Origin: Octopus sinensis
Lineage: Eukaryota
Assembly: GCF_006345805.1 (NCBI RefSeq)
Contig: NW_021823632.1
Location: 1-21,808 of the forward strand
Direction of reading: 5' to 3'
Length of the DNA stretch: 21,808 bases
Shown: positions 1 through 21,808 of the stretch, piece after piece
Layout: every line of letters begins with the position of its first letter
How positions within the stretch are numbered: the stretch's first letter is position 1
The notes under the pieces: model-generated
Database searches by the model: none
Seen by the model: only the letters and a program-made list of their open reading frames with translations
What the model was told of the DNA's origin: nothing
Program-made: the position numbers and the translations under genes

Positions 1-353
1 CCTTAACCAAGAGCAGCACTTCCCTTTGCTCAACATGCAAAGAGAGGCTTTCAGCTGCGAGAAAGGCGATGCCACCTTTATCTTTTCTTCCTTTCTAGTC
101 AGCACCATGACTACCTTACTCTTTCCCTCTCTACAGACAGACAACCTTTTTCTACGTATGAACTACTAACTAGCGAGTCATCCTTGTTGTCACTATCACT
201 AGAATTACTACTGTCTCTGTAACAACCAGTTGGGCAAACGAATAGATATATGTAAATAACATTTCTTCCTTCTTGGACTTAATTCTTCGAACGCATTAAT
301 ACCAGCGATGTGTAACAACATCTGATGGTCTGGTCGGTCACGTGATCACGTGA
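1..353 (+). mobile_element. Probable 3' end of a non-LTR retroposon (LINE/SINE tail) running into (AT)n; 5' part lies outside the window
   Basis: The segment ends ACCAGCGATGTGTAACAACATCTGATGGTCTGGTCGGTCACGTGATCACGTGA and runs directly into (AT)n. I recall this terminus from cephalopod interspersed repeats but could not verify it. No ORF. Confidence 0.35.
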
Positions 354-480
354 TATATATATATATATATAATAATAAATATTAGGGAATAAATCCAAAT
401 TTACAGGGAAAAAAATCAGATTTAGGATTAAATCCAATTTTATAGTAAAATATATTAATATATATTAATTGTCTCTAATA

Positions 481-518
<38 letters not shown>

Positions 519-1230
519 TGAAATGTATTTCGACCGCTTGGATTGCTTTCAAGGCCACTACATCCTGTCCGATTGACTCCAAAATTTACAGGGACATGTA
601 AAAGGAGGTGTTGATGCCCGTGGGCTACGTTAGAAATCCCTATCTTAAAAAGTGTCGTTGCTAGGGCCAAAAACCCACTTTGACAAGTCCACTCCCATTG
701 TTTAATGTATCTGTCTTCCTCACTCACGCTATTTCCTCCATTCCCCTCTAACTCCCCTTCACTTTCCCTTTATAAGTTCGTCAAACGGCGTTCTTTATCT
801 CGCTGTCTGCATTCATAGAGAGAATTACCATCACCACAAACAACACACAATCATGAGAACAAATATTATGAATCAGATATTTCTTGCGTTCATTTATATA
901 TGTGTGTGTGTGTTCTATATATAAATATGTATATATAATGTATATATACAAAGCGTATATATCTGTATTTATGAATATTAAACTTTTTAATACTTTTTGA
1001 TAGTTATATATATTTTTAAACAAATTATAAATATAATTTAATAATTTTTATTTTAAATTTAAATAATTTAAATTTTTCAATTTTATATTTTATATATTTT
1101 ATATATTATATTTTTATTTTTATGTTTTTGTTTTTGGTTTTTCACTGTTTGATTTGTCTATTAGTGGTTTTATCTCTAATTTAATTTATACATATATATA
1201 TATATATATAATTTGTATATATATTGCGTG

Positions 1231-1262
<32 letters not shown>

Positions 1263-1509
1263 CATATATATATATATAATGTGTGCATTATGTGGTCGGT
1301 CAGTTCAGCTGAAAATATGCACACCTATGTTAAAAGTGCTGGCAAGTTTGCATGACAACTATTTTTTTCCTCAAATGAAAGGCGTCACCTCTAGGACAAA
1401 ATTCCTCATCTTATAAAATGTGGCCCCAGTAGACCCGAATGAAATCGGGTTATATTAACCAAAATGTGAAAAGGGGTCTAAATGGGGCTGGAAGGGGATT
1501 AAAATTTAA

Positions 1510-1627
1510 AGGAGCGAGTGTTTAGGAATTCTCTGTTACATCAAGCTAAAACATTTGCGCCAGCCTTTTAATCATCAATGTGTTGCCGTCCATGATGAAG
1601 AAGTTTTGAATGCTTGCCATGGTGAGT
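1510..1627 (+). other. Candidate upstream (5' UTR or first) exon of the ankyrin gene
   Basis: Near-consensus donor ATG|GTGAGT at 1621|1622 in a locally CpG-richer stretch. The 5' boundary is not determinable. Confidence 0.25.
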
Positions 1628-2076
1628 CTACTGTCGTGAGAAAGAATCACTTCAAAACTTGGTGTTTACAAATTTTCTTTTACATCAAGTTCAAAATTTT
1701 ACGCTAGCCGTTAAACTGTCAATACGTTGCTCTCCGTCGTTAAGAAATGCCAGTCATGGTGACTCTACTATCCTCACATTCTATCCCTTCAAACTTTGGT
1801 TTCCAATATTTTATTATTTTTATTCAGCTTGCAAGTTCGTCTGTCCCTTTTAAATGTTAGCGTTTTGCTGTCTGCTTGAAGCAGACCTTTCCGTTGCCAC
1901 TGCCTGATATTTCTGATTGATCTTTCTAAATATTTTATTTCTCAACTTACTCAAGATCTTTTGTTGTTTATAAATGGGAGAGAGATAGATAAAGATAGAG
2001 AGTAAGAGAAAGCGAGGGAGAGTCTGAGAGAAAGGAAGAGTAACAGAGTGGGAAAGTGAGAGAGAAAGGAGAGAGA

Positions 2077-2387
2077 ATCATCATCATCATCATCGTTTAA
2101 CGTCCGTTTTCCGTGCTAGCACGGGTTGGACAGTTTGACCGGGGCCTGGAAAGTCAGGAGGCTGCACCAGGCTCCAGTCTGATCTGGCAGTGTTTCTACA
2201 GGTGGATGACCTTCCTAACGCCAACCACTCTGTGAGTGTAGTGGGTGCTTTTTTCGTGCCGCCGGCACAGGTGCCAGCGGGGCTCGCAGCGGCAACGATC
2301 GGTTGGTGCTTTTTACGTGCCACCGGCACAGAAGCCAGTCAAGGCGGTGCTGCAATCGGCAACCTTCGGATGGTGCTTTTTACGTGC
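2077..2387 (-). mobile_element. Short element or 5'-truncated copy made of the RTE 3' tail with (GAT)n
   Basis: Reverse complement of ...GGAGTGGTTGGCGTTAGGAAGG...CCGTGCTAGCACGGAAAACGGACGTTAAAC(GAT)n. It matches 13850-14161, 17800-18047 and 20945-21257 in this window. Confidence 0.85.
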
Positions 2388-2423
2388 TGAAAGGAAGCAA
2401 CAGAAGGTAACAACCACACTCTT

Positions 2424-2454
2424 ACCCACGCGAGAGCGGGTCACCTTCAGCTAG
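2424..2454 (+). mobile_element. Helitron-like 3' terminus (remnant)
   Basis: Imperfect GC hairpin ACCCACGCGAGAGCGGGT, a 9-nt spacer, then CTAG|T followed by (AT)n. This is the same architecture as the end at 10755-10783. No 5' end identified. Confidence 0.4.
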
Positions 2455-2958
2455 TATATATATATATATATATATGTATCAATGCGTGTGTGATAGGATG
2501 TGCTCCATGCATGACACTGTTCCATCCAAATTTTGACACTTGAGGTTAATCAGTTTAAATTCCTTCCATTTTGAATTCAAACGGATCCTGTACAATCAGC
2601 GGAGGGCTGTAATAATATAAAAAGCACATCATTAACGAGAGAAACAAGCAGGGGCTTCAACCTGGCCCTCCTTCATTTCATGTTACACCTGTTTCAGTAT
2701 TTGGTAACACATCGTTGTGTCAAACAATAGCTGCAATTGGTAGATGCACCTCATAAGGGCAGCATGTATAAAGAAATACATGCAGTAACCAAAACGAAAT
2801 ACTTGAGAGGTACACGGCTTGAAGGGAAGGGAGATCAGGAGAAGGTAGAGTGGGAACACAACCCCCAGAAACACAATTGTGGACTAGTGTTGATGAGAAT
2901 GGGGGCTAAGAATTGACCAGAGTTTGGGGATATAGGCTGTGCTTACATGCCCCCTTAA

Positions 2959-3179
2959 CCCTTTCGTTACTGTATTTATTTTGAGATGATCTGTGTTTCT
3001 TTCAATTATTTTAAATATAACAAAGAATTTAGTAAAATAACTTAGTTATTATTAAGCTAGTGTTAGGAACATAAATTGTGACCAAGGTTTGATGGAAGAT
3101 TTTAATTCAAAACTTATGAAAACAAGACATTTATACTAAAGAGCCAGAGCCAGTTTCAGCTGGGTTGGTATCAAAAGGG
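2959..3179. mobile_element. piggyBac-type MITE, copy 1
   Basis: TTAA at 2955-2958 and 3180-3183. TIRs CCCTTTCGTTAC / GTATCAAAAGGG, giving the TTAA-CCC...GGG-TTAA piggyBac signature. 221 bp, non-coding. Confidence 0.8.
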
Positions 3180-3210
3180 TTAAGAATTGTTTCTCTATTA
3201 TATTTTTAAA

Positions 3211-3427
3211 GCCTTTTGTTACCATATTCTGTAGAGATGCTCTGTGTTTCTTTCAATTAATTTTAAATATAACAAAGAATTATTAAAATAATGTATTCAT
3301 CATTAAGCTAGTGTTAGGAACAAATTGTGACTAAGGTTTCGTGGAAGATTTTAATTCAAAACTAATGAAAACAAGACATTTTACCACAGAGCCAGAGCCG
3401 GCTTCAGCCGGGTTAGTATCAAAATGG
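3211..3427. mobile_element. piggyBac-type MITE, copy 2 (diverged, same orientation)
   Basis: Colinear homolog of 2959-3179 over its whole length, with degenerate TIRs (GCCTTTTGTTAC / GTATCAAAATGG). TTAA at 3206-3209 and 3428-3431. Confidence 0.75.
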
Positions 3428-3657
3428 TTAAGAGAGGGGAGATAGGCGGGTAAGTAGATAACATATCAGGTGACCAGTAAGAGATTCTGGGTGCAATAAT
3501 CAAGCACCACTGGGGTTTGTGGTAGCACCATTGATAGATGCGTCCAACTACTTACAAACCTGCGGATACGCATTAACACATTAATATGCTTGCTTCCCAG
3601 CCACTCATGCGCAGAGAGTTGGTGGGTTGGTGGGGGCGGGGAATGAGTAGGAGGATT

Positions 3658-3847
3658 CCTTGAGCAAGACCTTTATTTCACGTTGGTCCAGTTTACTCAG
3701 CGAAAATGAGTTGTGCCTGTATTTCAAAGGGTCAACCTTGTCACACTCTGTGTCATGCTGAATCTCCCTGAGAACTACATTAGGGGTACACGCGTCTGTG
3801 GTGTACTCAGCCATTTGCATGTTAATTTCACAAATTAGCTGTTCCGT
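3658..3847 (+). mobile_element. SINE body fragment (CORE-like domain), head missing
   Basis: Starts CCTTGAGCAAGACCTTTATTTCACGTTG, which resembles the CORE-SINE motif CCTTGGGCAAGTCACTT and the sequence following the tRNA-like head at 7621-7650. The family identity is from recall. Confidence 0.55.
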
Positions 3848-3920
3848 CTTCTTTAAATTGCTCTTACTTCATTTTATAAGTTTTTAAAAACCATCTTACT
3901 TTCCTTTTCATTCAAAAGAC

Positions 3921-4004
3921 ATGGATGTAAATAAGATTATAAGCAAGATTCTGACTGGGAACTTTGAAGATGTGAAACGATTTATCAAAGAAAATCCTGA
4001 AACG
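3921..4004 (+). CDS. Ankyrin-repeat protein (MIB-like), coding exon 1: MDVNKIISKILTGNFEDVKRFIKENPET
   Basis: ATG at 3921 with an in-frame TAA upstream at 3885-3887. 28 codons end at a consensus donor ACG|GTAAGT (4005), phase 0. It joins exon 2 in frame to give an ankyrin N-cap (GNFEDVKRFIKENPETVNQRN). Confidence 0.75.
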
Positions 4005-6535
4005 GTAAGTTTACTTTATATTGCTTCTTCAATGTTGAATGTTTGTTTATTATTTTATACACAATATTAAATGTTCCTAAATAACCAGATATATTTGTCC
4101 ATAATATTTCATATCTTTCTTTACCTCTTTCCTCTAATCCTCATCATTGTCACTTTTTATAAATATTCAACCAGACAATGAGGTATGCCAGAATTGATGG
4201 AATGTCAGTGAGAGAGAAACCCATCCTCACACACTGCAATGGAATATTCTGGCAGGAAATTCAGTCCAAGAGATGGGGGACAGATGGATCCTATAGATAA
4301 ATGGTGACTTTGTCAAGAAATTCTCTTGCCATACACAGTTGAAGGTTTTACCGATGTCAAGGGCTACACTATTTCTTTTGCAGAAGTTGTCAACATAACC
4401 AAAACATGGGGAGTCACGTAGGAATCAGACCCCTGCTTGAACTGGCTTTATGGAACTGTACTGGTGCTCTTTGAATAGAAAAAGATACCCAAAGGGACAA
4501 AGATAATGGTTGTTTATGACTTTTTACTTCATAATTGAAATATTGGAAGTTAGAATGACTGGCTGGTAGTCAGCAGATAGGACACTATCAGCAAAAATTA
4601 TAAAACAGGGCTTCTCTAATAGAGTAGTACTACCATTGGGTAGGGATTGTGGAAAATTTTATAAGGACCAGGGAGCCAAGGCGGCTGTGGTGGTACAAAT
4701 ATATGAAACTCAATGTGTAGTTGTGTTTGGATCAGAGAACCATCATGGTTAGGGAGCGGTGGGTGGAATGATTCTGTAAAATCTATAGAGATACTCTTGG
4801 TAAGAGACCAGAAAATGAGGCTTTAATTTGGAAGGGAAGATAGCTGACAAATGGTGAAATGCAGTAAAAAACATCCTTTATTTTCTTGATGACCATCATA
4901 CATGTATTTCAATGGTGGGTGAATGTCTGCCAGTTAGTGAGGGTAGGTGTTTTCCTCAAGGTGGAGTCGATAGTGTTGTTTGTACAGCTGTAATGCAGTT
5001 GTGTATGAACCACTCACACCTTTTTAAATATTGTATGGCTACAAACTAATGTAAGCCCTGATACTGCTGCCACATTTAGGCTCAAAATTCTGATCACTAC
5101 TTTCATAATATTTCTTATTTTCTCCATTGTTTCTTTTCATTTGTGTCTACTTTTCCATAGCTGCTCATATTTAGTTGTGATTGGTGTGTTCCAAAGATGT
5201 CACAGATGTCTAATTACAAGTAATTACTTTGTAATAGATTCAGTGACTAACATAAATAGATTATCAATCTTTTCCTTGAGCTTATGCATGAACTAAACAA
5301 TCTTTATTTACCTGTTTACCTGTTACACCTTGATTTACCTGTGCTCTACACCTTTCTTGTAGATTTGCTTTCATTCTTTTCCAAGTAGATCCCACATTGC
5401 TGTTTCACCAGACATATGACATCTGAAGATCCATGCTTCATTTCAAACATCCTGTTCTTCTCTCACCATTTCTTAAACTTCTTTCATCATTATAGCATGA
5501 AATGAAAGTGCTACTATGCCAGACATCAGTGATAACAAAGTGTAGAATTTCATGAGCTTTACCAGGGAATACTAAACTAAAATCCAGTCTGATATATTCA
5601 GAATCTACACAATTATTTCTGAGGTTTTGACCCTTTATAGCTCTTCCCCTTTTCAGTTACTTTATACACCATCTTATGGCCTAATCCCTACAGTTGTATT
5701 GTTTATATGGTTTCTCTTATTTACCTGTGTGTCTCCTATCAGATACCACGTTTGAAATCTTGTCAGTGTTCTCTTCAATTCATAATTGATATCATACATA
5801 CCAGTAATAAACTGGGATATTTTCTCAACTGATTTTTTCCCCTTCAGTCGGATAAAAGTAAGGTTGTAACTAAGACAGACATCTTATGTTTCATAAGAAA
5901 GACTCTTCCATCTACCATGAAACGGTATATTTGTACTGATTTCCCTCGATATTGCTCTGTCCACTTCTATGAAAATACAGAAAGTACAAGTCATGTAAAG
6001 AAAGACACCAATGACCATCTAAAGTGCATGCCATCGTACACGGGATAGAACACTAAAAGACAGAAAAGGGAGCAGTAAAAGGACCATAAAAAGGAAAGGG
6101 TGCATAGGAACCAGTGTTTCTGAATTACAGAAAGTGTGGTGTTTTTGAAGGTTACAGTGTTCTGACTGCTAACAACCAGTGTAGATAGTTTATTCCGTAC
6201 CCTGACAATTCTGAGCATAAAATATTTGTTTCCGATACCATGGAAACTGGAATGGTTTTGTTTTTTATTTTATAAGCATGTCTGAGAGTGGTAAAGATAT
6301 TAAATTCCAGAAGTGGTCAAAGTTGTTGTTGAAAGATGAGGGATAATCTTGTGGGATCAAGTGAGTTGCTAGAAAGGACAAAATTCTGTGTCGATGCATG
6401 GAGAAGCAATACATTTAAGAAATGATAAGTGATTGAGTGAGGCTAATTTTATGGTTGTACATCTATGGACAGCTTCCAGTAGATTGGCATTCTGGACAAA
6501 ATGAGCATACCAGATTGGAGACACAACCTATACAT

Positions 6536-6862
6536 GATGGCTGCCCCCTCGTTATCGAGTATGGCAATTGCACGAAACTTAACTGTTATTGATGCTGTGA
6601 TCGAATGTGACTTTTTAGCCCAGCTAAAGATCTACAATGTCTTGTACAGAATTGGCAACTAAAACCTTTACTGGTAATAGCCGGCTGTAGTTGTAACTGG
6701 GCTTCATGTACCTTTGCATGTCATTTAAGTCCTCCTGCCGAATTACACTCTCTTCCACATGCCCGACAGATATGATTAGTATGGTGTGTTACACCACCAC
6801 CAGTGGCCAGATTATCACTCATCTGTCTCGCTTTATGATTACAAAGATGACTCGTGAGTCAT
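6536..6862 (-). mobile_element. 5'-truncated RTE (BovB-like) LINE 3' end encoding two C2H2 zinc fingers
   Basis: The minus-strand frame 6768->6586 reads CRACGRECNSAGGLK*HAKVH...FSCQFCTRHCRSLAGLKSHIRSQHQ*, followed by a short 3' UTR ...CTCGATAACGAGGGGGCAGCCA. It is flanked by a 9-bp direct repeat CCTATACAT (6527-6535, 6863-6871), a probable TSD. Confidence 0.75.
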
Positions 6863-7021
6863 CCTATACATACATACATGCATACATATCAGTATATATA
6901 TAACAAAGTATGGATATAGTAATCTAATTAGGTAACAATGTCTAAGTTAAATGTTTGTGAGAATTTGAAGTTGTAGCTTTATTGTACTTAGACCAGTGGT
7001 GGGACTTGAATGACTGGAACT

Positions 7022-7054
7022 ATACATACATACATACATACATACATACATACA

Positions 7055-7084
<30 letters not shown>
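7022..7084. repeat. (CATA)n microsatellite
   Basis: About 15-16 perfect CATA units, read directly. Confidence 0.95.
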
Positions 7085-7087
<3 letters not shown>

Positions 7088-7089
<2 letters not shown>

Positions 7090-7486
7090 GGTGGCTGCCC
7101 CCTCGTTATCGAGTATGGCCATTGTACGAAGCTTAATCAATGTTGTTATCGTGCAATGCCTGTGCAAGAAGATTTTTTTTAAAGTGAGGAAAGGCTGTGC
7201 ACTGAGTCAATCCCACTTACTAAGCAACAGCCGACATAATCCGAAAAGAAGAACAAGTCAACATCATCGGTAACCACTGAGCTGCAGGTTTTATGCCGGA
7301 GTTATCCCAGTTACCTGAGTTACCTTCGCCTAGAAGAATGCCCTAACAAAGGCTAGGAGTTCTTCACTCCCAATGGTTTAACCATGCGATCGGGTATTCG
7401 GTCCGATTATTTCTATGTTCCCGTGCATGATACAGCCTTAAGACATTTATTGGATGGCCATTGACTCTCGAGAGTTCCTCCACCCG
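7088..7486 (-). mobile_element. Non-autonomous retroposon sharing its 3' end with the ZnF-RTE at 6536-6862
   Basis: 7092-7136 matches 6538-6582 (45 bp, 3 substitutions). The rest is non-coding and hairpin-rich. It is flanked by (CATA)n on both sides. Confidence 0.65.
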
Positions 7487-7538
7487 TACATACATACATA
7501 CATGTGTGTGTGTATGTATATGTGTATATGTATATGAA

Positions 7539-7652
7539 GGTGAATGGCTCAATGGTTAGGGCAACAGGTTCACAATCAGGAGATAGTGAGTTTGATTCCC
7601 AGTCTGGGCTGTGTGTTGTATTCTTCAGCAAAACATTTTATTTCATGTTGCA
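7539..7652 (+). mobile_element. tRNA-derived SINE head (degenerate)
   Basis: Pol III A-box-like TGGCTCAATGG (7545-7555) and B-box-like GTTTGATTCC (7590-7599), followed by sequence homologous to the SINE body start at 3658. Confidence 0.65.
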
Positions 7653-7656
7653 CACT

Positions 7657-7691
<35 letters not shown>

Positions 7692-7825
7692 CTTTCTTTC
7701 TTTGTCTTTCATATCCCTTTCTTTCACTCCAGCATCTTCTTTACTCTCTCTTCTCTTCACTCCTTTCTCTCTCTCTCTCTCTCTCCTTTGATATATTTTA
7801 TATATCTTCTCTTTCTTCTCTTCAG

Positions 7826-7977
7826 GTCAACCAAAGAAACTCACACAGTAAAACTTTCTTAATGGCAGCATGTGCACAGGGCAGCACAAGTCTAATGGAC
7901 TTCTTGATAGAATCTGGAGCCAATATGGACATGAGTGACAAAGCAGGTCTGACAGCTTTACATTATGCTGTGATTAA
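7826..7977 (+). CDS. Ankyrin-repeat protein, coding exon 2: VNQRNSHSKTFLMAACAQGSTSLMDFLIESGANMDMSDKAGLTALHYAVI(N)
   Basis: Long polypyrimidine tract plus TTCAG| acceptor (7825) and AA|GTAAGA donor (7978). 152 nt, phases 0-2. Contains ankyrin motifs GANMD and GLTALHYA. Confidence 0.9.
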
Positions 7978-8425
7978 GTAAGACTTGAATTAACTAAAAT
8001 CTTCAGATCTGCTTTTGTTTTGAAGTTTTTTGCAATTCCAGACTATTTGAATATCCAAAGATACCATAATAGTGGCAGTGTGACACGATAACAGCATGAT
8101 AGTAGTAACCAAATAACATCTTTTTCTCATTTTCTCCATGAATCCTCTTCATTGAATCACAAAAATCTTTTTCGTTATTTGTTGTCAAAACAGATTTTTT
8201 TGTTTTGGAGATATTCTTTGAGAGCCAACAGTTCTTAGAGAAATTATTTCTCACCTCCATCTGCAACTCACTCAACACATTTTGAGATCTATTATATTTT
8301 GAATTGTGCTTCATAAGGTCATCTCTGGACAATGAAACATGTTTTGAAGTTCTTGTTAGTTTCTATAGCTTCTGCAGTCACAAATTGTTCCAGAATTTTG
8401 CACAAACACACAAACACACACACAC

Positions 8426-10275: not shown

Positions 10276-10782
10276 TCTATATATATAAAACTCTAGTTGT
10301 GTGATTGTCTGTCCCCTTCGATTTAGATTCCTAACTACTCCCACATTTTGCGGTGCAGTTTAACCAAATTCGGGTATCTTATAGTCGTGATTCATATCGA
10401 GCCCGTCTGACTATTAACGCGCGTCAACGATGAGTCTATGATTTTAAAAATAATTTAACATAATTTTTTATTCCATTTTAATGCATAAAATGCATCGTAT
10501 GTCGATGGCGGCGGAGTTGGCGTCCACGCTCACAGCTGCACCTGTTTGCTTCTCCCCCTTCCCTCCCTCGTGAAGCTGTGGGGAAGGAGTGTAAAGAAAT
10601 CAACGTCGTAATGCGTTGTGAAGGAAACCAGCGTTCTTTTAGAACAACGACTTCATGGCTTGAAGACACCAAAACGAAAATGGCTAAGAAAGCCCGAATT
10701 TATAAGGGAAGTAACTCTCTAAAAATGCTTATATAGTAGTTATTCCCTTACAAACCCGAGCAAAGCCGGGCGATACTGCTAG
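10276..10782 (+). mobile_element. Non-autonomous Helitron (complete termini)
   Basis: 5' A|TCTATATATATAAAAC, a 3' GC hairpin CCCGAGCAAAGCCGGG (10755-10770), an 8-nt spacer and CTAG|T. The A|T insertion site without a TSD is the standard Helitron signature. Confidence 0.8.
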
Positions 10783-10822
<40 letters not shown>

Positions 10823-13800
10823 TTCACAGGCAAGGAATACAGGTACAAGATTTTCTGGGCAGGGAACACTGACGGGGTAGGGTGCGTGGGTATACTTCTT
10901 GCAGAGAAATGGGTTGATAAGGTAGTCGAGGTAGTCAGAGTATGTGACAGAATCCTTAAGATTAGACTAGTGCTTTATCATAGGTCAGCAACCATTATCT
11001 CGGCGTATGCCCCTCGGCCGGGGCTACCAGAAGGACAGAAAGACCGATTCTATGACACCCTATTACTGACTACCTCGTTGACAAATGACAGTGACCTTCT
11101 CTTTGTGGCAGGTGATTTCAATGGACATGTTGGACGGCATGTCGGGGGCTTCCACGGCATACACGGGGCCATGGTTTTGACTCTCGCAACGAGGAGGGAA
11201 CCAGGCTGCTGGAGTTCTGCGATGCAAATGACCTTATGATTTGCAATACCAACTTCAGGAAACCCACCTCTCACCTAGTCACCTACCGTTCTGGCAGACA
11301 CACTAGCCGGATCGACTACATCCTCGCCAGAAAGAGGGAAAAAGGGCTGCTTATTAATGCCAAAACCTTCCCAGGTGAGGAATGTACCCCTCAACATAGA
11401 TTAGTAGTTAGCGACTTCAGAATCAGGGCCAAATGGATGCCCAGAATAAGACCAGTTCGGAGGAGAAGAGTCTGGAAACTTAAAGATCCTGTAAATGGTC
11501 GGAGATTTAGAGAAGTTCTACTCGAAGCTTTCGACGAAATAGAAGGGGATATAGCATCACAAAATGTGGAAGCCAACTGGAGGTTTCTACGGGACAATCT
11601 GCTGAAAGCCACTGACCAGATCTGTGGATGGAGCAAAGTCCCATCTCGTCCCAGGGTAACGTGGTGGTGGAACAGTGTTGTAGACAGGGCTATTAGAGAC
11701 AAGAGACAGGCTTGGAAGGACTGGAAGAAAGGCGGTAGTAGGGAATTGTATCAGACTGCGAAAAGAGAAGCTAGGAGACAGGTATATTTAGCTAGAGGGG
11801 AAGCAGATAAGAAAAAGGACCAAAGACTTGAGGTGTTTCGTGTTGCAAGACAGTGTGTGAAGAGAATCGTGATGTGGTAGGAGAGAAATGTGTTCGCATG
11901 GATGATGGTTCACTTGCGCTGAATGAGGATGCAAAGAGAGAGGTTTGGAGATGCCACTATGAAAGGTTGCTCAACAAAGAGAATGAATGGGATAAAGAGA
12001 GTCTGCCGAATGTCGACCCAAAAGAGGGACCAGCTATCCGAGTTGACAGTTCCATGGTAGTTAAGGTAATTAGTAGCATGAAGAATGGGAAAGCCCCAGG
12101 CCCATCAGGAATTACTGCTGAGATGCTCAAAATATCTGGCAGTGTCGGCTATAGCCTAGTCACCCATATAGTTAACCAGGTGATACACGAAGGAGTCATA
12201 CCCAATGACTGGTGTAGTAGCATAATAGTCAACTGCTACAAAGGTAAGGGTGACGCTCTAGATACAAGTAATTACAGAGGTATCAAGCTGTTGGATCAGG
12301 TAATGAAGGTTACGGAAAGCATCATAGCCCAACTGATTAGAGAGAGAGTCAACCTAGACGAGATGCAGTTTGGTTTCGTGCCAGGGAAAAGCACCACTGA
12401 TGCCATATTTCTGGTGAGACAGCTGCAGGAGAAATACCTAGCGAAAGATAAAACTCTGTACCTGGCTTTCGTTGACTTGGAGAAAGCCTTTGACAGGGTC
12501 CCCCGTTCCCTTATCTGGTGGTCAATGAGGAAACTAGGTATAGATGAATGGTTAGTGAGAGCTGTGCGTGCCATGTACAGGGACGCTGTTAGTAAGGTGA
12601 GGGTTGGCAACGAGTACAGCAAAGAATTCCAGGTGGAGGTTGGGGTCCACCAAGGCTCAGTCCTCAGCCCCCTCCTATTTATCATAGTCCTCCAGGCAAT
12701 AACGGAGGAATTCAAGACAGGATGCCCCTGGGAGCTCCTCTATGCTGATGACCTTGCTCTAATTGCTGAATCACTATCGGAACTCGAGGAGAAGTTTCAG
12801 GTGTGGAAGCAAGGATTAGAATCGAAGGGCCTTAGAGTCAATCTAGCTAAAACCAAAGTCCTAATAAGTAGGAAGGTAGACAAATTTCAAACGCCATCAG
12901 GTAGATGGCCCTGCTCGATCTGTAGAAAAGGCGTAGGTAGGAACTCTATAAGATGCACCAAGTGTAAGCTATGGACACATAAGAGGTGCAGCAATGTCAA
13001 AGGAAGGCTAACTAGGAAAATAGTTTTGTATGTGGCAGATGCTCTGGTGCAATAAACACTGAAAATGCGCAGAGACCGTCTTCCGCCACATTCCAGGGAG
13101 AAAAACTAGAAATAGTTGATAGTTTCCGTTACCTAGGTGATCAAGTCAGTAGTGGGGGTGGGTGTGCCGAAAGTGTAACTGCTAGAGTAAGAATAGCCTG
13201 GACAAAGTTCAGAGAGCTCTTACCTCTGCTGGTGACAAAAGGCCTTTCGCTCAGAGTAAAAGGCAGACTGTATGACGCATGTGTGCGAACAGCCATGCTA
13301 CATGGCAGTGAAACATGGGCTGTGACTGCTGAGGATATGCGTAAGCTTGCAAGAAATGAAGCCAGTATGCCCCGTTGGATGTGTAATGTCAGTGTTCATA
13401 CCAGACAGAGTGTAAGTGCCTTGAGAGAAAAGTTGGACCTAAGAGGTATCAGATGTGGTGTGCAAGAGAGGCGTCTACGCTGGTATGGACACGTAGTAAG
13501 AATGGATGAAGATAGTTGTGTGAAAAAGTGCCACACCCTGGCAGTTGAGGGAACCTGTGGAAGAGGCAGACCCAGGAAAACCTGGGACGAGGTGGTGAAG
13601 AACGACCTTCGCTCTTTAGGTCTCACCAGAGATCAAGACCTTTGGAAGTATGCTGTGCGTGAGAAGACCCGGATGGACAAGTGAGGCCATACCCCATGGC
13701 CCCTATCTGGAACGTAGTCAGTGCACCTATGCATACCTTCCTTCTTGGGGCACATAACTCTACTTGTGAAGACCTGTTGAGGCAAGTGAAAATGGACAAA

Positions 13801-14161
13801 ATCAAAGCAAACTCGATGAACACTAATGGAATTTGTAGTTTTGTGGTACCAGTGCCGGTGGCACATACAAAAACCATCCGAACGTGGCCGTAGCCAGTAC
13901 CGCATTGACTGGCCTCCATGCCAGTGGCACATAAAAAAACACCATCCAAGTGGCCATTCGCCAGCCTCATCTGGCACCTGTGTCGGTGGCACATAAAATC
14001 ACCCACTACACTCTCGGAGTGGTTGGCGTTAGGAAGGGCATCCAGCTGTAGAAACACTGCCAGATCTGACTGGCCTGGTGCAGCCTTCGGCTTCCCAGAC
14101 CCCAGTTGAACCGTCCAACCCATGCTCGCATGGAAAGCGGACGTTAAACGATGATGATGAT
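10823..14161 (+). mobile_element. RTE-clade LINE, copy 1, 5'-truncated inside the APE endonuclease: EN-RT(PHD insert)-C-term, 3' UTR, (GAT)n tail
   Basis: APE motifs (SAYAP, AGDFNGHVG, SRIDYIL, PQHRLVV) and RT motifs (KAPGPSG, NYRGIKLL, QFGF, AFVDLEKAFDRV, GVHQGSVLSPLLF, YADD at 12741, FRYLG at 13124). The frame is broken only by -1 indels near 11168, 11860 and 13027. ORF stop at 13682-13684; tail CGGACGTTAAACGATGATGATGAT. Confidence 0.95.
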
Positions 14162-14279: not shown

Positions 14280-14436
14280 CCGTAAAATTGGTGCTGTGGC
14301 CTCCTTAGTCTCCAGGGGAGCAAATGTTAATAAGCAGAACTCATGGGGCAACACACCTCTACATCGGGCTGCGCAGAACAACTATGATGATGTAGTCAAA
14401 GTCCTGTTAAGTAGCAAAGGAAATAACATTTTACAG
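14280..14436 (+). CDS. Ankyrin-repeat protein, coding exon 3: (N)RKIGAVASLVSRGANVNKQNSWGNTPLHRAAQNNYDDVVKVLLSSKGNNILQ
   Basis: TTTTTTTCTTCCTTTCAG| acceptor (14279) and CAG|GTTAGC donor (14437). 157 nt, phases 2-0. The AA+C junction gives Asn and keeps the ankyrin register (GANVN, GNTPLH). Confidence 0.9.
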
Positions 14437-14519: not shown

Positions 14520-15240
14520 CAGTTTAGTGCCCCAAATTTCGTTTCTTCATAACTGATGATTCATGTTTTTTTAAATAAAAGTTGCTGCAAGACTTCCTTT
14601 TCTACCCCACAAAAAAACCACCCTTTCTTTAAATTTTTTTCCCCGACACAAATCCCGCTTTTCGGTTAAGGGAAATATGAATCTGCAAAAAAATTGGCAA
14701 AAATCGGCATTTTTAAATTACCCCCCATCTCTATTTCCTTCATTCTTTACTTTTTTCACAATTTTTTTTTTCAGAATATGCGGAAAAATACGGAGATGAT
14801 GATTCGGACAAAAATTTCAAAACATTTCCATAGTTAGGGTTAGGGTTAGTGTTGGGGAAAAAACGTCAGAGTTGAAGAATTTGGGAGGGGGTGGAAATTC
14901 CACTGCTGATTTTTGGCAATTTTCCGGCAAAAAATTTTTTTAAATAAACAAATTTAGGAGAAAATGGTGGTGGCGGGGGGACTCTTTTGAAAGTTGCTCA
15001 TTTCCTTGTGTGTAGATGATGATTATGGTAATAAAATAAATAACTTTGATGAGTTGCAGATCAATACCCCTCCTCCCACAACACTCACTTTTTCACTTTC
15101 TTTCTCACAATCCAGACATAATTGTTTGCTACAACATGGAAAAGGGTGGATTTCTGTTAAATTTCATTGAAAAATGGGTGGTCTTTTGGAAATGGTCTCA
15201 CAAAATGGAAATTATTTGTTCAGCAGTTTCTCTAAACAGT
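14520..15240. repeat. Degenerate palindromic non-coding element (possible old MITE) with a central TTAGGG run
   Basis: Inverted pairs at 14690-14709 / 14904-14923 and about 14610-14627 / 15139-15157, with GTTAGGGTTAGGGTTAG at 14833-14849. Boundaries are uncertain. Confidence 0.35.
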
Positions 15241-15272
15241 TTATATTTTTTTAATTTTAAATTTTCTTCACA

Positions 15273-18047
15273 CAGACCTATTACTCAAAGCCTTTGACGA
15301 AATAGAAGGGGATATAACATCATATGATGTTGAAGACAACTGGAGGTTTCTACGGGACAACCTGCTGGGGGCCACTGACCAGATCTGTGGATGGTGCAAA
15401 GTCCCCTCTCGACCTAAGGTAACGGTGGTGGAACAGCATTGTTGACAGGGCTATTAGACAAAAGAAACAGGCTTGGAAGGACTGGAAGAGCGGTGGTAGC
15501 AGGGAATTGTATCAGACTGCCAGAAGGGAAGCTAGGAGACAGGTTTATTTAGCCAGAGGGGAAGCAGATAAGAAAAAATTTGCCAATGTTCTGTGCCATG
15601 AAGACCAAAGACTTGAGGTATTTTGTGTTGCAAGACAGTGTGTGAGAGAGAATCATGATGTCGTAGGAGAGAAATGTATCCGCATGAATGATGGTTCACT
15701 TGCATTAAACGAGACTGCAAAGAGAGAGGTTTGGAAATGCCACTATGAAAGGTTGTTCTTTAAAGAGAATGAATGGGAGAAAGAGAGTCTGCTGAATGTC
15801 GACCCAACAGAGGGATCAGCTATCCGAGTTGACATACCTTGGTAGATAAAGCAATTAAGAGTATGAAGACAGGGAAAGCCCCCAGCCCATCAGGAATCAC
15901 CACAGAGATACTCAAAATATCTGGCAGTGTTGGCTATAGCCTAGTTACCTGTCTAGTTGACCAGGTGATACATGAAGGACTCATACCTATGACTGGTGTA
16001 GTAGCACTATAGACAACTGCTACAAAAGTAAAGGTGACGCTTTAGATACAAATAATTATTGAAGTATTAAGTTGTTGGATCAGGTAATAAAGGTCACGGA
16101 GAGGGTCATAGCCCAACTAATTAGGGAGAGAGTCAGTTTAGATGAGATGCTGCTTAGGTTCATGCTAGGGAAAAGCACCACTGATGCTATATTTCTGGTA
16201 AGACAGCTGCAGGAGAAATACCTAGCCAAAGATAAACCTCTGTACCTGGCTTTCGTTGACATGGAGAAAGCCTTTGACAGGGTCCTCCGATCCCTTATCT
16301 GGTGCTCAATGAGGAAACTAGGGATAGGTGAATGGTTAGTGAGAGCTGTGCAAGCCACATACAGGGACGCTGTCAGTAAGGTGAGGGTTGGCAACGAGTA
16401 TAGAGAAGAATTCCGAGTAGGGGTAGGGGTCCACCAAGTATCTGTCCTTAGCCCCCGCTTATTCATCATAGTCCTCCAAGCAATAACAGAGGAATTCAAG
16501 ACATGATGCCCCTGGGAGCTCCTCTATGCTGATGACCTTGCTCTAATTACTGAGTCACTATCAGAACTAGAGGAAAAGGTTCAGGTGTCGAAGCAAGGAT
16601 TAGAATCGAAGGTCCTTAGAGTCAACCTAGCTAAAACCAAAGTCTTAATAAGTAGCAAGGCAGACAAATCACAAACACCTTCAGGTAGATGGCCCTGCTC
16701 AATCTGTAGAAAAGGTGTAGGTAGAAACTATAAGATGTATCCAGTGTAAGCTATGGACACATAAGAGGTGCAGTAATATCAAAGGAAGGCTAACTGGGAA
16801 GATAGTTTTTGTATGTGGCAGATGCTCAGGTGCTATAAACACGGAAAATGCGCAGAGAACAGCTTCTGTCACATTCCAGGGAAAAAAACTAGAAGTAGTG
16901 GATAGCTTCCATTAACTAGGGGACCAAGTCAATAGCAGGGGTGGATGCTCTGATAGTGTAGCTGCTAGAATAAGAATAGCCTGGGCAAAGTTCAAAGAGC
17001 TCCTACTCCTGCTGGTGACAAAGGGCCTCTCACTCAGAGTAAAAGGTTGACTGTATGACGCATGTGTACAAACAGCCATGCTACATGGCAGTGAAACATG
17101 GGCTGTGACTGCTGAGGACATGGCTAAGCTTGCAAGGAATGAAGCCAGTATGCTCCACAGGATTTGTGATGTCTGTGCATACATGGGAGAAAAGTTGGTG
17201 TGCAGGAGAGATGACTGCGCTGCTATGGTCATGTGTTGCGAATGAATGAGGACAGCTGTGTGAAAAAGTGTTACACCCTAGCAGTTGAGAGAACCTGTGG
17301 AAGAGGTAGACCCAGGAAAACCTGGGATGAGGTGGTGAAGCATGGCCTTCCAACATTGGATTTTACCGAGGCAATGACTAGTGACCGGGACCTTTACAGA
17401 TATGCTGTGCTTGAGAAGACTCGACAAGCCAAGGGAAACCATGGCCTATGCCAGTGGATGTAACCAGCCCACTTAGGAATACTCATTCATTGGAAGATAA
17501 ACCGAAGAACTATTGAGGCAAGTGAAATCAAAATTGCTGATGCGGCCGACGACAGTACCGCCTGATTGGCACTCATGCCAGTGAAACGTTAAAAGCACAT
17601 CCGAATGTGGGGTGTAACCAGGACACTTATGGGTACCCCTCATTCATTGGACAATGAACTTTGCTTGTGAAGACTTTTTGAGGCCAGTGAAAACAAACCA
17701 CAATCGCTGACGTGGCCGATGACAGTACCACTGATGCCAGTGGAAAGTTAAAAGCACATCCAAGCGTGATCGTTGCCAGGGCCATGGATTGGCTCCCGTG
17801 CCAGTGACACATGAAAAACAACATTCAAGCATCATCATTGCCAGTGCCACCGGACTGGCTCCCATGCCGGTGGCACAAAAGAGGACTCAACTAGACTCTC
17901 GGAGTGGTTGGCATTAGGAAGGACATCCAGCTGTAGAAACATTGCCTGACCAGATTGAGCCTGGTGCAGCCTCTGGCTCACCAGTCCTCAGTCAAACCGT
18001 CCAACCCATGACAGCATGGAAAGCGGACGTTAAACGATGATGATGAT
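15273..18047 (+). mobile_element. RTE-clade LINE, copy 2, further 5'-truncated and decayed (same family as 10823-14161)
   Basis: Colinear with 11510-14161 (8 mismatches in one 60-nt window compared by eye). It has multiple stops and frameshifts (e.g. TAG 15843, TGA 16504), a YADD remnant, a PHD remnant at 16696-16825 and the same (GAT)n tail. Confidence 0.93.
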
Positions 18048-18166
18048 ATCTATACATACATATGCAAATATACACACACATAAACACATATATACACAAA
18101 AATACATAAACAAGTGATCAGTGAAAATATAAAACATGTATGTATATATATATGGATGTGAGAGTG

Positions 18167-18376: not shown

Positions 18377-19040
18377 GTCACTCAGCCAAATAATGATCAT
18401 TGGACCCCTCTACATGTTGCCTCTTATCAAGGACACACAGACACAGCTAAACTTCTCCTACAACAAAAGGACACTGATGTGAGGGTGAAGGACAAAGATG
18501 GTTGGACACCTCTACATCTTGCCTGTCAGAATGGACACACAGACACAGCTAAACTTCTCATACAACAAAAGGGCACTGATGTGAGGGTGGTGGGCAACAA
18601 TGGTTGTACACCTCTACATCTTGCCTCACTTCAAGGACACACAGACACAGCTAAACTTCTCCTACAACAAAATGGCACTGATGTGAGGGTGGTGGACAAA
18701 GATCGTTGGACACCTCTACATCTTGCCTCACTTCATGGACACACAGACACAGCTAAACTTCTCATACAACAAAAGGGCACTGATGTGAGTGTGGTGACCA
18801 ACGATGGTTGGACACCTCTACATCTTGCCTCACTTCATGGACACACAGACACAGCTAACTTCTCCTACAACAAAATGGCACTGATGTGAGGGTGGTGAGC
18901 AACGATGGTTGGACACCTCTACATCATGCCTCTTATAATGGACACACAGACACAGCTGAACTTCTCCTACGACAAAATGGCATCAATGCCAATAAAATGG
19001 ACAATGATGGTGACACTCCTCTCCATGTGGCAGTTCAAAA
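18377..19040 (+). CDS. Ankyrin-repeat protein, coding exon 4: six 34-aa repeats plus the start of a seventh; contains a -1 frameshift at 18857-18858
   Basis: TTTATCTTTTTTAG| acceptor (18376) and AA|GTAAGT donor (19041). W/C/D-TPLH cores start at 18401, 18503, 18605, 18707, 18809, 18910 and 19012. Restoring one A gives 665 nt, phases 0-2, and continuity with exon 5. Confidence 0.9.
18389..19038 (+). repeat. Coding tandem repeat, 102-bp unit, about 6.4 copies
   Basis: Core spacing is 102,102,102,102,101,102 nt. The block GGACACACAGACACAGCT is identical in all six full units. Confidence 0.97.
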
Positions 19041-20385: not shown

Positions 20386-21255
20386 TTATACACTAACGTG
20401 CTTTGCTTTCCTTTTCTTTCTCCACGAAATTTAATTCTTTAAACCCCTCCGGTATAAAAGTTAATTTCGTTCATTTCTCTATGCTACCCTAAAACATCGC
20501 CATTTCCGCCATTCGTTCGTCTTTAAGGTACCTTCAATCCTTTAATTCGATCTTCGCCATTCGCGGTGCGCCGCCTTTTCCCACCCCCACCACCAATACG
20601 GTGAACACTGTTCACACCATCTACACCGGATATGCCCTCCCCCACCAACATTACGTGTGTCTCTCCCTCCTACCCCTCCTCCTCACATGCTTTCAATGGT
20701 ATTACCCCTCCCTCCCCACCAAGACAAGCAGCTAGCGCCGCAGCTCATCAACCGCCCCACTTATCTTACGTTTCCTCCTGTTTTGAATCTGTCACTGCCT
20801 CAACCAGCTATCTCCTTCCAGTCCCCTCCCCCACTCGTGATGTCCTACGTTTTATTTCCTACGAACCTGCACCAACCCTGCCTGTCATCGTTCCTCTTAC
20901 CCCAACCCTCCCCACTGGTGCTTCCCTATATTACCTGCACCCCCAAAAAGCACCATCCGAACGTGGCCGATGCCAGCGCCGCCTTGGCTGGCTTCCGTGC
21001 CACTGGTACGTTAAAAGCTCGAACCGATCGTGACCGATGCCGGACCCCCCCCTGGCACCTGTGCAGGTGGCACGTAAAAAGCACCCACAACACTCGCGGA
21101 GTGGTTGGCGTTAGGAAGGGCATCCAACCATAGAAACTCTGCCAGATCAGACTGGAGCCTGGAGCAGCCCCTGGCTTCCCAGACCCCGGTCAAACCGTCC
21201 AACCCGTGCTAGCGCGGAAAACGGACGTTAAACGATGATGATGATGATGATGATG

Positions 21256-21780: not shown

Positions 21781-21808
21781 GCAACACTATGGTGTGGTAT
21801 CGTTGATG
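21781..21808 (+). CDS. Ankyrin-repeat protein, coding exon 5 (partial, runs off the window): (K)QHYGVVSLM
   Basis: TTTTTTCCTCTCCTCTTTGTATAACTTTCAG| acceptor ends at 21780. The AA+G junction gives TPLHVAVQKQHYGVVSLM, a correctly registered ankyrin helix pair. Confidence 0.8.

Follow-up and report, generated by a model that had tools for sequence, protein, structure and literature searches.

The 21,808-nt stretch of Octopus sinensis DNA analysed here (RefSeq assembly GCF_006345805.1, contig NW_021823632.1, positions 1 to 21,808 of the forward strand; hereafter the window) contains a block of six tandem ankyrin units which, on sequence evidence, is exon 4 of a multi-exon Octopus gene belonging to a little-studied family that joins ankyrin repeats to RING and Death domains. 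The analysis indicated that the array is a real, fast-reshuffling array of recognition type, and that the copy in the window is probably a decaying copy or a null allele unless a frameshift detected within it is an assembly error. The chances of this reading as a whole are, in our judgement, a little better than even. An earlier note, made from the sequence of the window alone, had described the array as a natural counterpart of designed ankyrin repeat proteins (DARPins), with an invariant framework and exclusively non-synonymous variation, and had proposed recent amplification or gene conversion combined with diversifying selection on binding residues.

Reshuffling of the ankyrin array

Two loci collinear with the window were included in the comparison: O. 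vulgaris OX597842.1 at 29.58 Mb (L001, reached via the protein model P0121) and O. sinensis contig VCDQ01005398.1 (L002, reached via P0241). Substitution divergence in introns was 1.95% between the window and L002, 3.15% between the window and L001, and 3.25% between L001 and L002. At the substitution level, the introns of the window were 97–98% identical to those of L002, the closest locus, and ~97% identical to those of L001, the next closest, which places the window in the O. vulgaris/sinensis complex. The window copy and L002 may be alleles or recent paralogs. Positions 1–8237 of the window align with positions 1–8301 of L002 from first base to first base (97.4% identity); this shared start seems to be the same breakpoint, as expected of haplotigs or of contigs broken at the same repeat.

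The matching exon comprised six units in the window, nine units and a half unit in L001, and ten units, one of them of 33 codons, in L002. The array is thus not monomorphic, with 6, 9, and 10 units in three closely related loci. For further comparison, 25 units were pooled (6 + 9 + 10) and labelled W (window), V (L001), and S (L002). Unit W2 differed from S3 by 4 nt and from V6 by 6 nt, the closest match of both W3 and W5 was S7 (4 and 3 nt, respectively), and units V2, V3, and V4 were identical. Within the window, units two apart were closer to each other (distances of 7 and 5) than neighbours (12, 9, and 7), which is the pattern of a 204-bp duplication. In the 25 units, 16 types of hairpin and 13 of helix 1 were combined in 23 different ways, and a single helix-1 type was paired with up to five different hairpins.

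The differences were distributed unevenly along the unit. The mean pairwise nucleotide distance was 0.199 in nucleotides 1–42 and 0.028 in nucleotides 43–102, and synonymous events were 11 times denser in codons 1–14 than in codons 15–34 (Fisher p = 0.0017). The scarcity of synonymous events in codons 15–34 indicates that the “invariant framework” is held at the DNA level and not by protein constraint alone. Together, the shared unit types, the 204-bp pattern, the module combinations, and the uneven distances point to unequal crossing-over with short-tract gene conversion. The idea of recent amplification or exchange within the exon was therefore borne out by identical neighbouring units, a higher-order pattern, and shuffled modules. 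In addition, exons 2 and 3 of the window differed from those of L001 and L002 by 0.07–0.11 at synonymous sites (pS) and by 0.06–0.09 at non-synonymous sites (pN), and the introns by 0.02–0.03. The higher divergence of these exons even at silent sites suggests gene conversion from paralogs.

A mechanism can be outlined from these patterns. Unequal crossing-over would alter the number of units, giving arrays of 6, 9, or 10, and gene conversion would reshuffle the hairpin module and the helix-1 module between units, while helix 2 and the loop, encoded by the 3'-terminal 60 bp of every unit, are kept near-identical, silent sites included. This would leave a consensus-like scaffold that differs between units in the beta-hairpin and at the end of helix 1, the two elements making up the target-binding face of ankyrin proteins. 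By analogy, in intact members of the family the array would most likely be the substrate- or ligand-recognition part of an E3 ligase or death-fold signalling protein, with its specificity rapidly re-dealt. An immune or self/non-self role can be guessed at solely from the RING and Death domains of the relatives.

The variation within the window array largely followed the earlier description. Between units 2 and 5, 11 of the 34 codons vary (1–5, 12–14, 24, 27, and 32; 15 variable nucleotide columns), each altering the amino acid, and eight of the 11 lie in the hairpin or at the end of helix 1. The codons of TPLH and GHTDTA are nucleotide-identical in units 2–6, and the outer units read SYQ and SYN. 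The reported lack of synonymous differences holds codon by codon in units 2–5; however, silent-type steps are contained in codons 12 (TGT/TCA) and 13 (CAG/CTT). Nei–Gojobori counting of these four units gave 1.5 synonymous and 14.5 non-synonymous steps, a shortfall of synonymous steps without statistical significance (binomial p = 0.21). Units 1 and 6 and the related arrays do contain plainly synonymous variants (ACA/ACC, CTA/CTC, TCG/TCA/TCT, CTT/CTC, and AAC/AAT). Across the 25 units, six different residues were found at position 13 and six at position 1.

The 2003 DARPin library of Binz et al. reportedly varies positions 2, 3, 5, 13, 14, and 33 together with the restricted position 26 (33-residue numbering), which are said to have been picked because they lie at the surface and are not conserved in natural repeats. 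Of the 11 variable codons, six coincide with these seven positions (hypergeometric p = 0.002), in agreement with the coincidence pointed out before. The randomised positions of DARPins lie on the concave binding face (PMC8229355).

The assignment of the array to the ankyrin repeats was well supported. Pfam Ank (PF00023) matched five stretches (E = 5e-46, 152.5 bits, cut-off 21.1), Ank_2 (PF12796) scored 144.6 bits, and sequence matches in PDB also backed the assignment. Tandem Repeats Finder (TRF) delimited the array at 18400–18982 with a period of 102, 5.7 copies, 90% matches, and a score of 893. The repeat period is thus 34 residues (102 bp) rather than 33, the only 33-residue unit being that of L002. 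The highly internally conserved (HiC) ankyrin repeats described by Dyrka et al. (2014; PMC4986451) have 33–34 residues, and the 34-residue period is a tolerated variant of the ankyrin repeat.

An AlphaFold2 model was obtained for the in-frame 160 residues with a 50-sequence alignment; a single-sequence run, which gave an all-strand structure with a predicted local distance difference test score (pLDDT) of 35, was discarded. The predicted structure had a pLDDT of 97.7, a predicted template modelling score of 0.92, and helix pairs every 34 residues. In the model, helix 1 comprises unit positions 7–14 and thus holds the variable positions 10 and 12–14, and positions 1–5 form the hairpin loop. Mapping of the variable sites on such a model, as the earlier note had advised, therefore placed them on the hairpin and helix 1. 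The best Foldseek matches were the engineered ankyrin OR264 (4GPM) and many DARPins, with TM-scores of 0.87–0.94, root-mean-square deviations of 1.0–1.2 Å, and 35–46% identity. By these matches, the term “DARPin-like” is fair for the scaffold, save for the extra residue per repeat.

Frameshift and state of the window copy

Unit 5 measures 101 bp instead of 102 bp, GCTAAACTT having become GCTAACTT. In each of the 24 other units examined, codon 21, which is affected by the loss, is AAA or GAA. Translation in the incoming frame runs through TPLH/GHTDTA repeats up to ...GHTDTANFSYNKMALM, where a TGA codon follows. Only a different frame is open across unit 6 and the terminal half unit (LLLQQNGTDVRVVSNDGW...DGDTPLHVAVQ). 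The splice phases of the neighbouring exons need a length of 2 mod 3 (662 bp) and exon 4 has 661 bp; thus, one base is missing. The matching exon in L002 is open throughout and has 1070 bp (2 mod 3). The −1 frameshift and the TGA at 18887–18889 had been overlooked in the earlier note. The four central units do begin at 18491, 18593, 18695, and 18797, but the last of them is not a 102-bp unit, and the span of 18389–19038 given for the array does contain tandem units, but the exon ends at 19037 (CAAAA/gtaagt, the slash marking the splice site).

The framework of the window copy was also affected. Framework codons (4, 6–9, 11, 15–26, and 28–34) were scored against the pooled consensus, and the six units of the window had ten replacements and one synonymous deviation, compared with two replacements and five synonymous deviations both in the nine units of L001 and in the ten units of L002 (binomial p = 2e-4 for the excess of replacements in the window). 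The replacements are G4H, G28D, V34K, L24I (twice), G4R, R32S, K21E, Q25R, and D30N; three affect conserved hairpin or loop glycines, and another three are located 3' of the frameshift. Codons 4, 24, 27, and 32, which are among the 11 variable ones, owe their variability solely to substitutions absent from all units of L001 and L002. Codons 4, 24, and 32 are framework positions conserved elsewhere, a conserved glycine among them, and codon 27 is a variable position. The excess of framework replacements points to relaxed constraint, and the window-only substitutions at these four codons look like decay rather than adaptive diversification. Most likely, then, part of the “all non-synonymous” pattern reflects relaxed constraint and not adaptive diversification. 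We infer that the window copy, which has the shortest of the three arrays, is probably a pseudogene or null allele.

Several observations weigh against decay of this copy. Exons 1–3 and the part of exon 5 within the window are uninterrupted and flanked by good splice sites, and the RING and Death exons are located farther downstream, outside the window. One-base indels are frequent among the introns of the three assemblies (4.2–4.7 per kb, about half of them in homopolymers), and the frameshift sits in an A-run, so that an assembly error is possible. Single-base deletions were also found in exon 1 of L002 (~4010), in exon 2 of L001 (~9989, outside a homopolymer and creating a stop), and in exon 4 of L001 (~15445, in unit 8, at a different A-run). 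These deletions would mean either decay of every copy, across several genomes, or a high frequency of indel errors in the assemblies. In addition, some of the framework replacements in the window could be adaptive or derive from an unseen paralog. On balance, the frameshift is somewhat probably real, with an assembly artefact retaining a substantial share of the probability.

If the missing A were such an artefact, the window would carry an intact functional gene whose germline variable recognition surface is under diversifying selection. This would agree with the open exon of L002 over its ten units, with the frequent one-base indels between assemblies, with the variable number of units, and with P0242, an intact full-length O. 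sinensis paralog that has four units of the same type as the array, varying at the same positions. Two of the selection results presented below, the M1a/M2a comparison and the excess of pN over intron divergence, also fit. However, the excess of framework-damaging replacements, three of them at conserved glycines, speaks against it, and this explanation was considered unlikely, though it deserves attention.

The frameshift might also be real but tolerated, if splicing between 18885 and 18886 yielded a shorter in-frame protein of five repeats. The TGA created by the shift overlaps a donor-like motif, GAT/GTGAGG, which recurs in units 1–4 (GT at 18479, 18581, 18683, and 18785), and a cut at this site would end in phase 2, matching exon 5 (G/CAACAC..., 21781). 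The L001 frameshift stands in the same relation to its unit-8 donor, and the NCBI model P0121 of O. vulgaris uses the unit-1 equivalent. However, exon 5 is then translated in the wrong frame in P0121, a sign that the model may be an artefact, and ten nonsense-frame residues would replace helix 2 of unit 5. Judging from the motifs, use of these putative donors would be conceivable, but a rescue of the window copy by them is very improbable. Programmed frameshifting and RNA editing were considered as ways of bypassing the lesion and rejected, as no supporting feature was found and A-to-I editing cannot restore a base. Decay of the window copy within a reshuffling family thus remains the reading that we prefer.

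Possible selection on the variable positions

The concentration of changes at particular sites is robust. Tree-free minimal-event counts on 22 internal units yielded 8 synonymous and 35 non-synonymous events (omega ~1.4, not significant). The seven DARPin-library positions held 21 non-synonymous events on 17.8 sites, a density of 1.18 per site, which differs from the unit-wide synonymous density of 0.32 per site with a Fisher p of 6e-7. This value was rejected as evidence for positive selection, because the synonymous variants cluster in the very same 42 bp. Relative to the synonymous density found locally, in codons 1–14 (0.72), the ratio is ~1.2–1.75 and not significant. Since synonymous variation is densest in these codons, the local omega is only ~1.2.

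A GY94 site-class fit of our own on a neighbour-joining tree gave an omega of 1.07 under M0. The comparison of M1a with M2a was significant (likelihood-ratio statistic of 25.6, p = 3e-6), with 11% of sites at an omega of 5.6, namely codons 1, 3, 5, and 13. This result was not relied on, because a single tree is wrong for shuffled modules and inflates the test. In the nearest cross-locus unit pairs, pN was 0.061 and pS 0.038; pN thus exceeded the divergence of the introns, which does not surpass 0.033 (Poisson p = 0.002). Accelerated amino-acid change in the array is therefore likely, and diversifying or positive selection is plausible but unproven.

The diversifying selection proposed in the earlier note was accordingly not demonstrated. 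Variation is strongly concentrated at canonical binding positions; the overall omega of about 1.1–1.4 is not significant, nor are the recombination-robust estimates of 1.2–1.4. Synonymous diversity is raised in the same segment, the pS of exons 2 and 3 above intron divergence points to conversion from paralogs, and a tree-based test is invalid under module shuffling. The site-model test (M1a/M2a) was significant, yet it is confounded by recombination. Judged by the refuting conditions set in the earlier note, the hypothesis is neither refuted nor established.

The same data can be explained with no selection for diversity in the family, if the framework is constrained, the 3' 60 bp is homogenised by conversion, and the hairpin and helix-1 codons drift. 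The sharing of the same 42 bp by synonymous and non-synonymous variants, the non-significant local omega of codons 1–14 (~1.16), and the M0 omega near unity are consistent with drift; moreover, the DARPin-library positions are reportedly those that natural repeats leave non-conserved at their surface (for the general point, see PMC8229355). However, the six residues present at each of positions 13 and 1 among only 25 very young units, and the non-synonymous divergence above that of introns, are hard to reconcile with it. The few framework replacements in L001 and L002, where the surface changes freely, also fit selection that favours or tolerates surface change. Drift as the sole explanation was thus regarded as doubtful.

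Gene structure, gene family, and known repeat systems

The exons and other features of the gene within the window are listed in Table 1. Exons 1–5 are collinear with P0242, P0241, and P0121, following the same order with 70–84% amino-acid identity. An origin of the array from a minus-strand gene or a non-coding satellite was rejected, since the plus-strand frame, the splice sites, and the homology are unambiguous; on the minus strand over the array, no open reading frame (ORF) of at least 80 aa was found.

Table 1. Features of the array-bearing gene in the window (a slash marks a splice site).
Feature	Position	Strand	Evidence or remark
Exon 1, start codon (MDVNKIISKILTGNFEDVKRFIKENPET), then gtaagt donor	3921-4004	+	tblastn with P0242, 77% identity
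Exon 2 (VNQRNSHSKTFLMAACAQGSTSLMDFLIESGANMDMSDKAGLTALHYAVI-), first ankyrin repeat; phase 0 start, phase 2 end	7826-7977	+	Pfam Ank match
Exon 3 (-RKIGAVASLVSRGANVNKQNSWGNTPLHRAAQNNYDDVVKVLLSSKGNNILQ), second ankyrin repeat	14280-14436	+	Pfam Ank match
Exon 4, array exon, ag/GTCACTCAG ... GTTCAAAA/gtaagt	18377-19037	+	661 bp
Six tandem 34-codon ankyrin units	18389-18999	+	TRF, unit cutting, Pfam Ank E = 5e-46
Unit starts	18389, 18491, 18593, 18695, 18797, 18898
1-bp deletion, AA instead of AAA	18857-18858	+	-1 frameshift
Donor-like motif GAT/GTGAGG in unit 5	18883-18891	+	motif scan
Premature TGA in exon-entering frame	18887-18889	+	ORF 18479-18889 ends here
Terminal half unit (DNDGDTPLHVAVQ-), runs on into exon 5	19000-19037	+
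Exon 5 start, ttcag/G CAA CAC TAT GGT..., -QHYGVVSLM; window end truncates exon	21781-21808	+

The introns contain several repeats. Two non-LTR (long terminal repeat) retrotransposons of the long interspersed element (LINE) type were found at 10287–14160 (intron 2) and 15012–18136 (intron 3), each with an RVT_1 match. They have the same orientation as the gene, are 84% identical to each other, and are absent from the collinear L001 and L002; the first retains a 400-aa reverse transcriptase ORF at 11853–13055. A repeat of ~260–300 bp is present in four copies in the window (2080–2341 (+), 13861–14161, 17747–18066, and 20945–21251 (−)) and also occurs at 29205–29471 of L001. Two of its copies are the 3' ends of the two LINE insertions, and it looks like a short interspersed element with a tail common to that LINE family. 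A segment of ~2.2 kb in intron 1 (5585–7777) is shared by the window and L002 and is absent from the O. vulgaris locus L001.

When the array alone was used as the query, protein searches mostly returned generic consensus-like ankyrin proteins, together with O. vulgaris and O. sinensis entries. Longer composite and more specific queries recovered P0121 (O. vulgaris “secG-like isoform X17”), P0241 (O. sinensis), P0242 (O. sinensis “ankyrin-3-like X4”, 607 aa), and several “MIB2-like” and “RF_0381” entries. P0242 and P0250 have about nine ankyrin repeats each, followed by a zf-C3HC4_3 RING domain (40.6 and 39.4 bits, respectively; cut-off 27) and, at the C terminus, a Death domain (34.8 and 45.1 bits against a cut-off of 22.6). 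RING and Death domains are also present in L001 and L002. Among the hits recovered, the order ANK-RING-Death in one protein was seen only in Octopus. A Pfam domain scan of the relatives gave no match to a NOD domain (NACHT or NB-ARC), and the literature yielded nothing specific on an octopus or cephalopod ANK/RING/Death family.

The NCBI models of L001 and L002 are partly out of frame. The stretch ATLWCGIVDAGPG of P0121 (L001) results from misframed translation of exon 5 (QHYGVVSLMLAQ), whereas P0241 (L002) lacks four array units and gives the last unit, likewise misframed, as LNFSYNKMASMPIKRTMMVTLLSIWQFKGK. A second intragenic tandem array was observed in the same gene outside the window, between the RING and Death exons of L001 (26207–26918), where mini-exon-like units encoding VCPKSEEKAVQAVVESV recur every 166 bp. 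P0241, P0250, and P0252 carry differing numbers of a related (E/V)CP(K/R)..EKxVxxVxES motif.

Arrays of this type are known from fungal immune-type receptors, and the octopus array shares their anatomy and dynamics. The HiC ankyrin, TPR, and WD arrays of fungal NOD-like receptors (NLRs) show repeat-number polymorphism, reshuffling, and positively selected sites in the inner helix and the hairpin; in metazoans, HiC repeats account for 0.8% of the repeat proteins of these three types (Dyrka et al., 2014; PMC4986451). Fungal NLR repeat arrays were also treated by Paoletti et al. (2007), as cited in PMC4986451. Both the fungal and the octopus arrays consist of near-identical tandem ankyrin units of 33–34 residues, differ in repeat number between alleles or loci, have reshuffled repeats, and are hypervariable at inner-helix and hairpin positions, the enrichment in octopus being significant (p = 0.002). 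In addition, the top Foldseek match of the octopus array, 4GPM, served as a modelling template in Dyrka et al. (2014; PMC4986451). The mean amino-acid identity to the array consensus was 0.82 in the window (0.87 in inner units), 0.89 in L001, and 0.88 in L002, compared with the HiC criterion of ~85% over at least 100 residues, and nucleotide identity was 0.91–0.93. However, the octopus array belongs to an animal, a cephalopod, is joined to RING and Death domains instead of NACHT or NB-ARC, and is encoded in one exon of an intron-rich gene, with the window copy frameshifted. Positive selection, reported for the fungal arrays, is not established for it.

The octopus array resembles DARPins and consensus ankyrins (OR264, 4GPM; E3_5, 1MJ0) in its invariant, consensus-like framework, in varying at positions 2, 3, 5, 13, and 14 and at the position before the loop glycine, and in its predicted fold, which superposes closely at the deviation and identity given above. 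Unlike them, it is natural and has no designed capping repeats, its unit of 34 residues is one residue longer between helix 2 and the loop glycine (LLLQQxG vs LLKxG), and positions 1, 10, and 12 also vary, whereas library position 33 (octopus 34) does not. MIB2, ANKDD1, ankyrins, and NF-kappaB p100/p105, after which NCBI names the octopus relatives, likewise combine ankyrin repeats with a C3HC4 RING or a Death domain, and by analogy their ankyrin part would be expected to bind a substrate or partner. However, they are without near-identical tandem units, and their kinship to the octopus family is by shared domains only.

These results carry two cautions: assemblies and gene models fail at such arrays, and an “all non-synonymous” pattern in a single copy can equally signal decay. 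At the same time, the array makes the cephalopod ANK-RING-Death family a concrete candidate for a molluscan system of intracellular recognition that evolves rapidly. More speculatively, and with low probability, it may be the germline “cassette” surface of family-specific octopus ANK-RING-Death E3 ligases, re-dealt by crossing-over and conversion and kept by diversifying selection. If so, decayed copies such as that in the window would be by-products of turnover, and the family would be an animal counterpart of the hypervariable repeats of fungal NLRs, with recognition coupled to ubiquitination and death-fold signalling.

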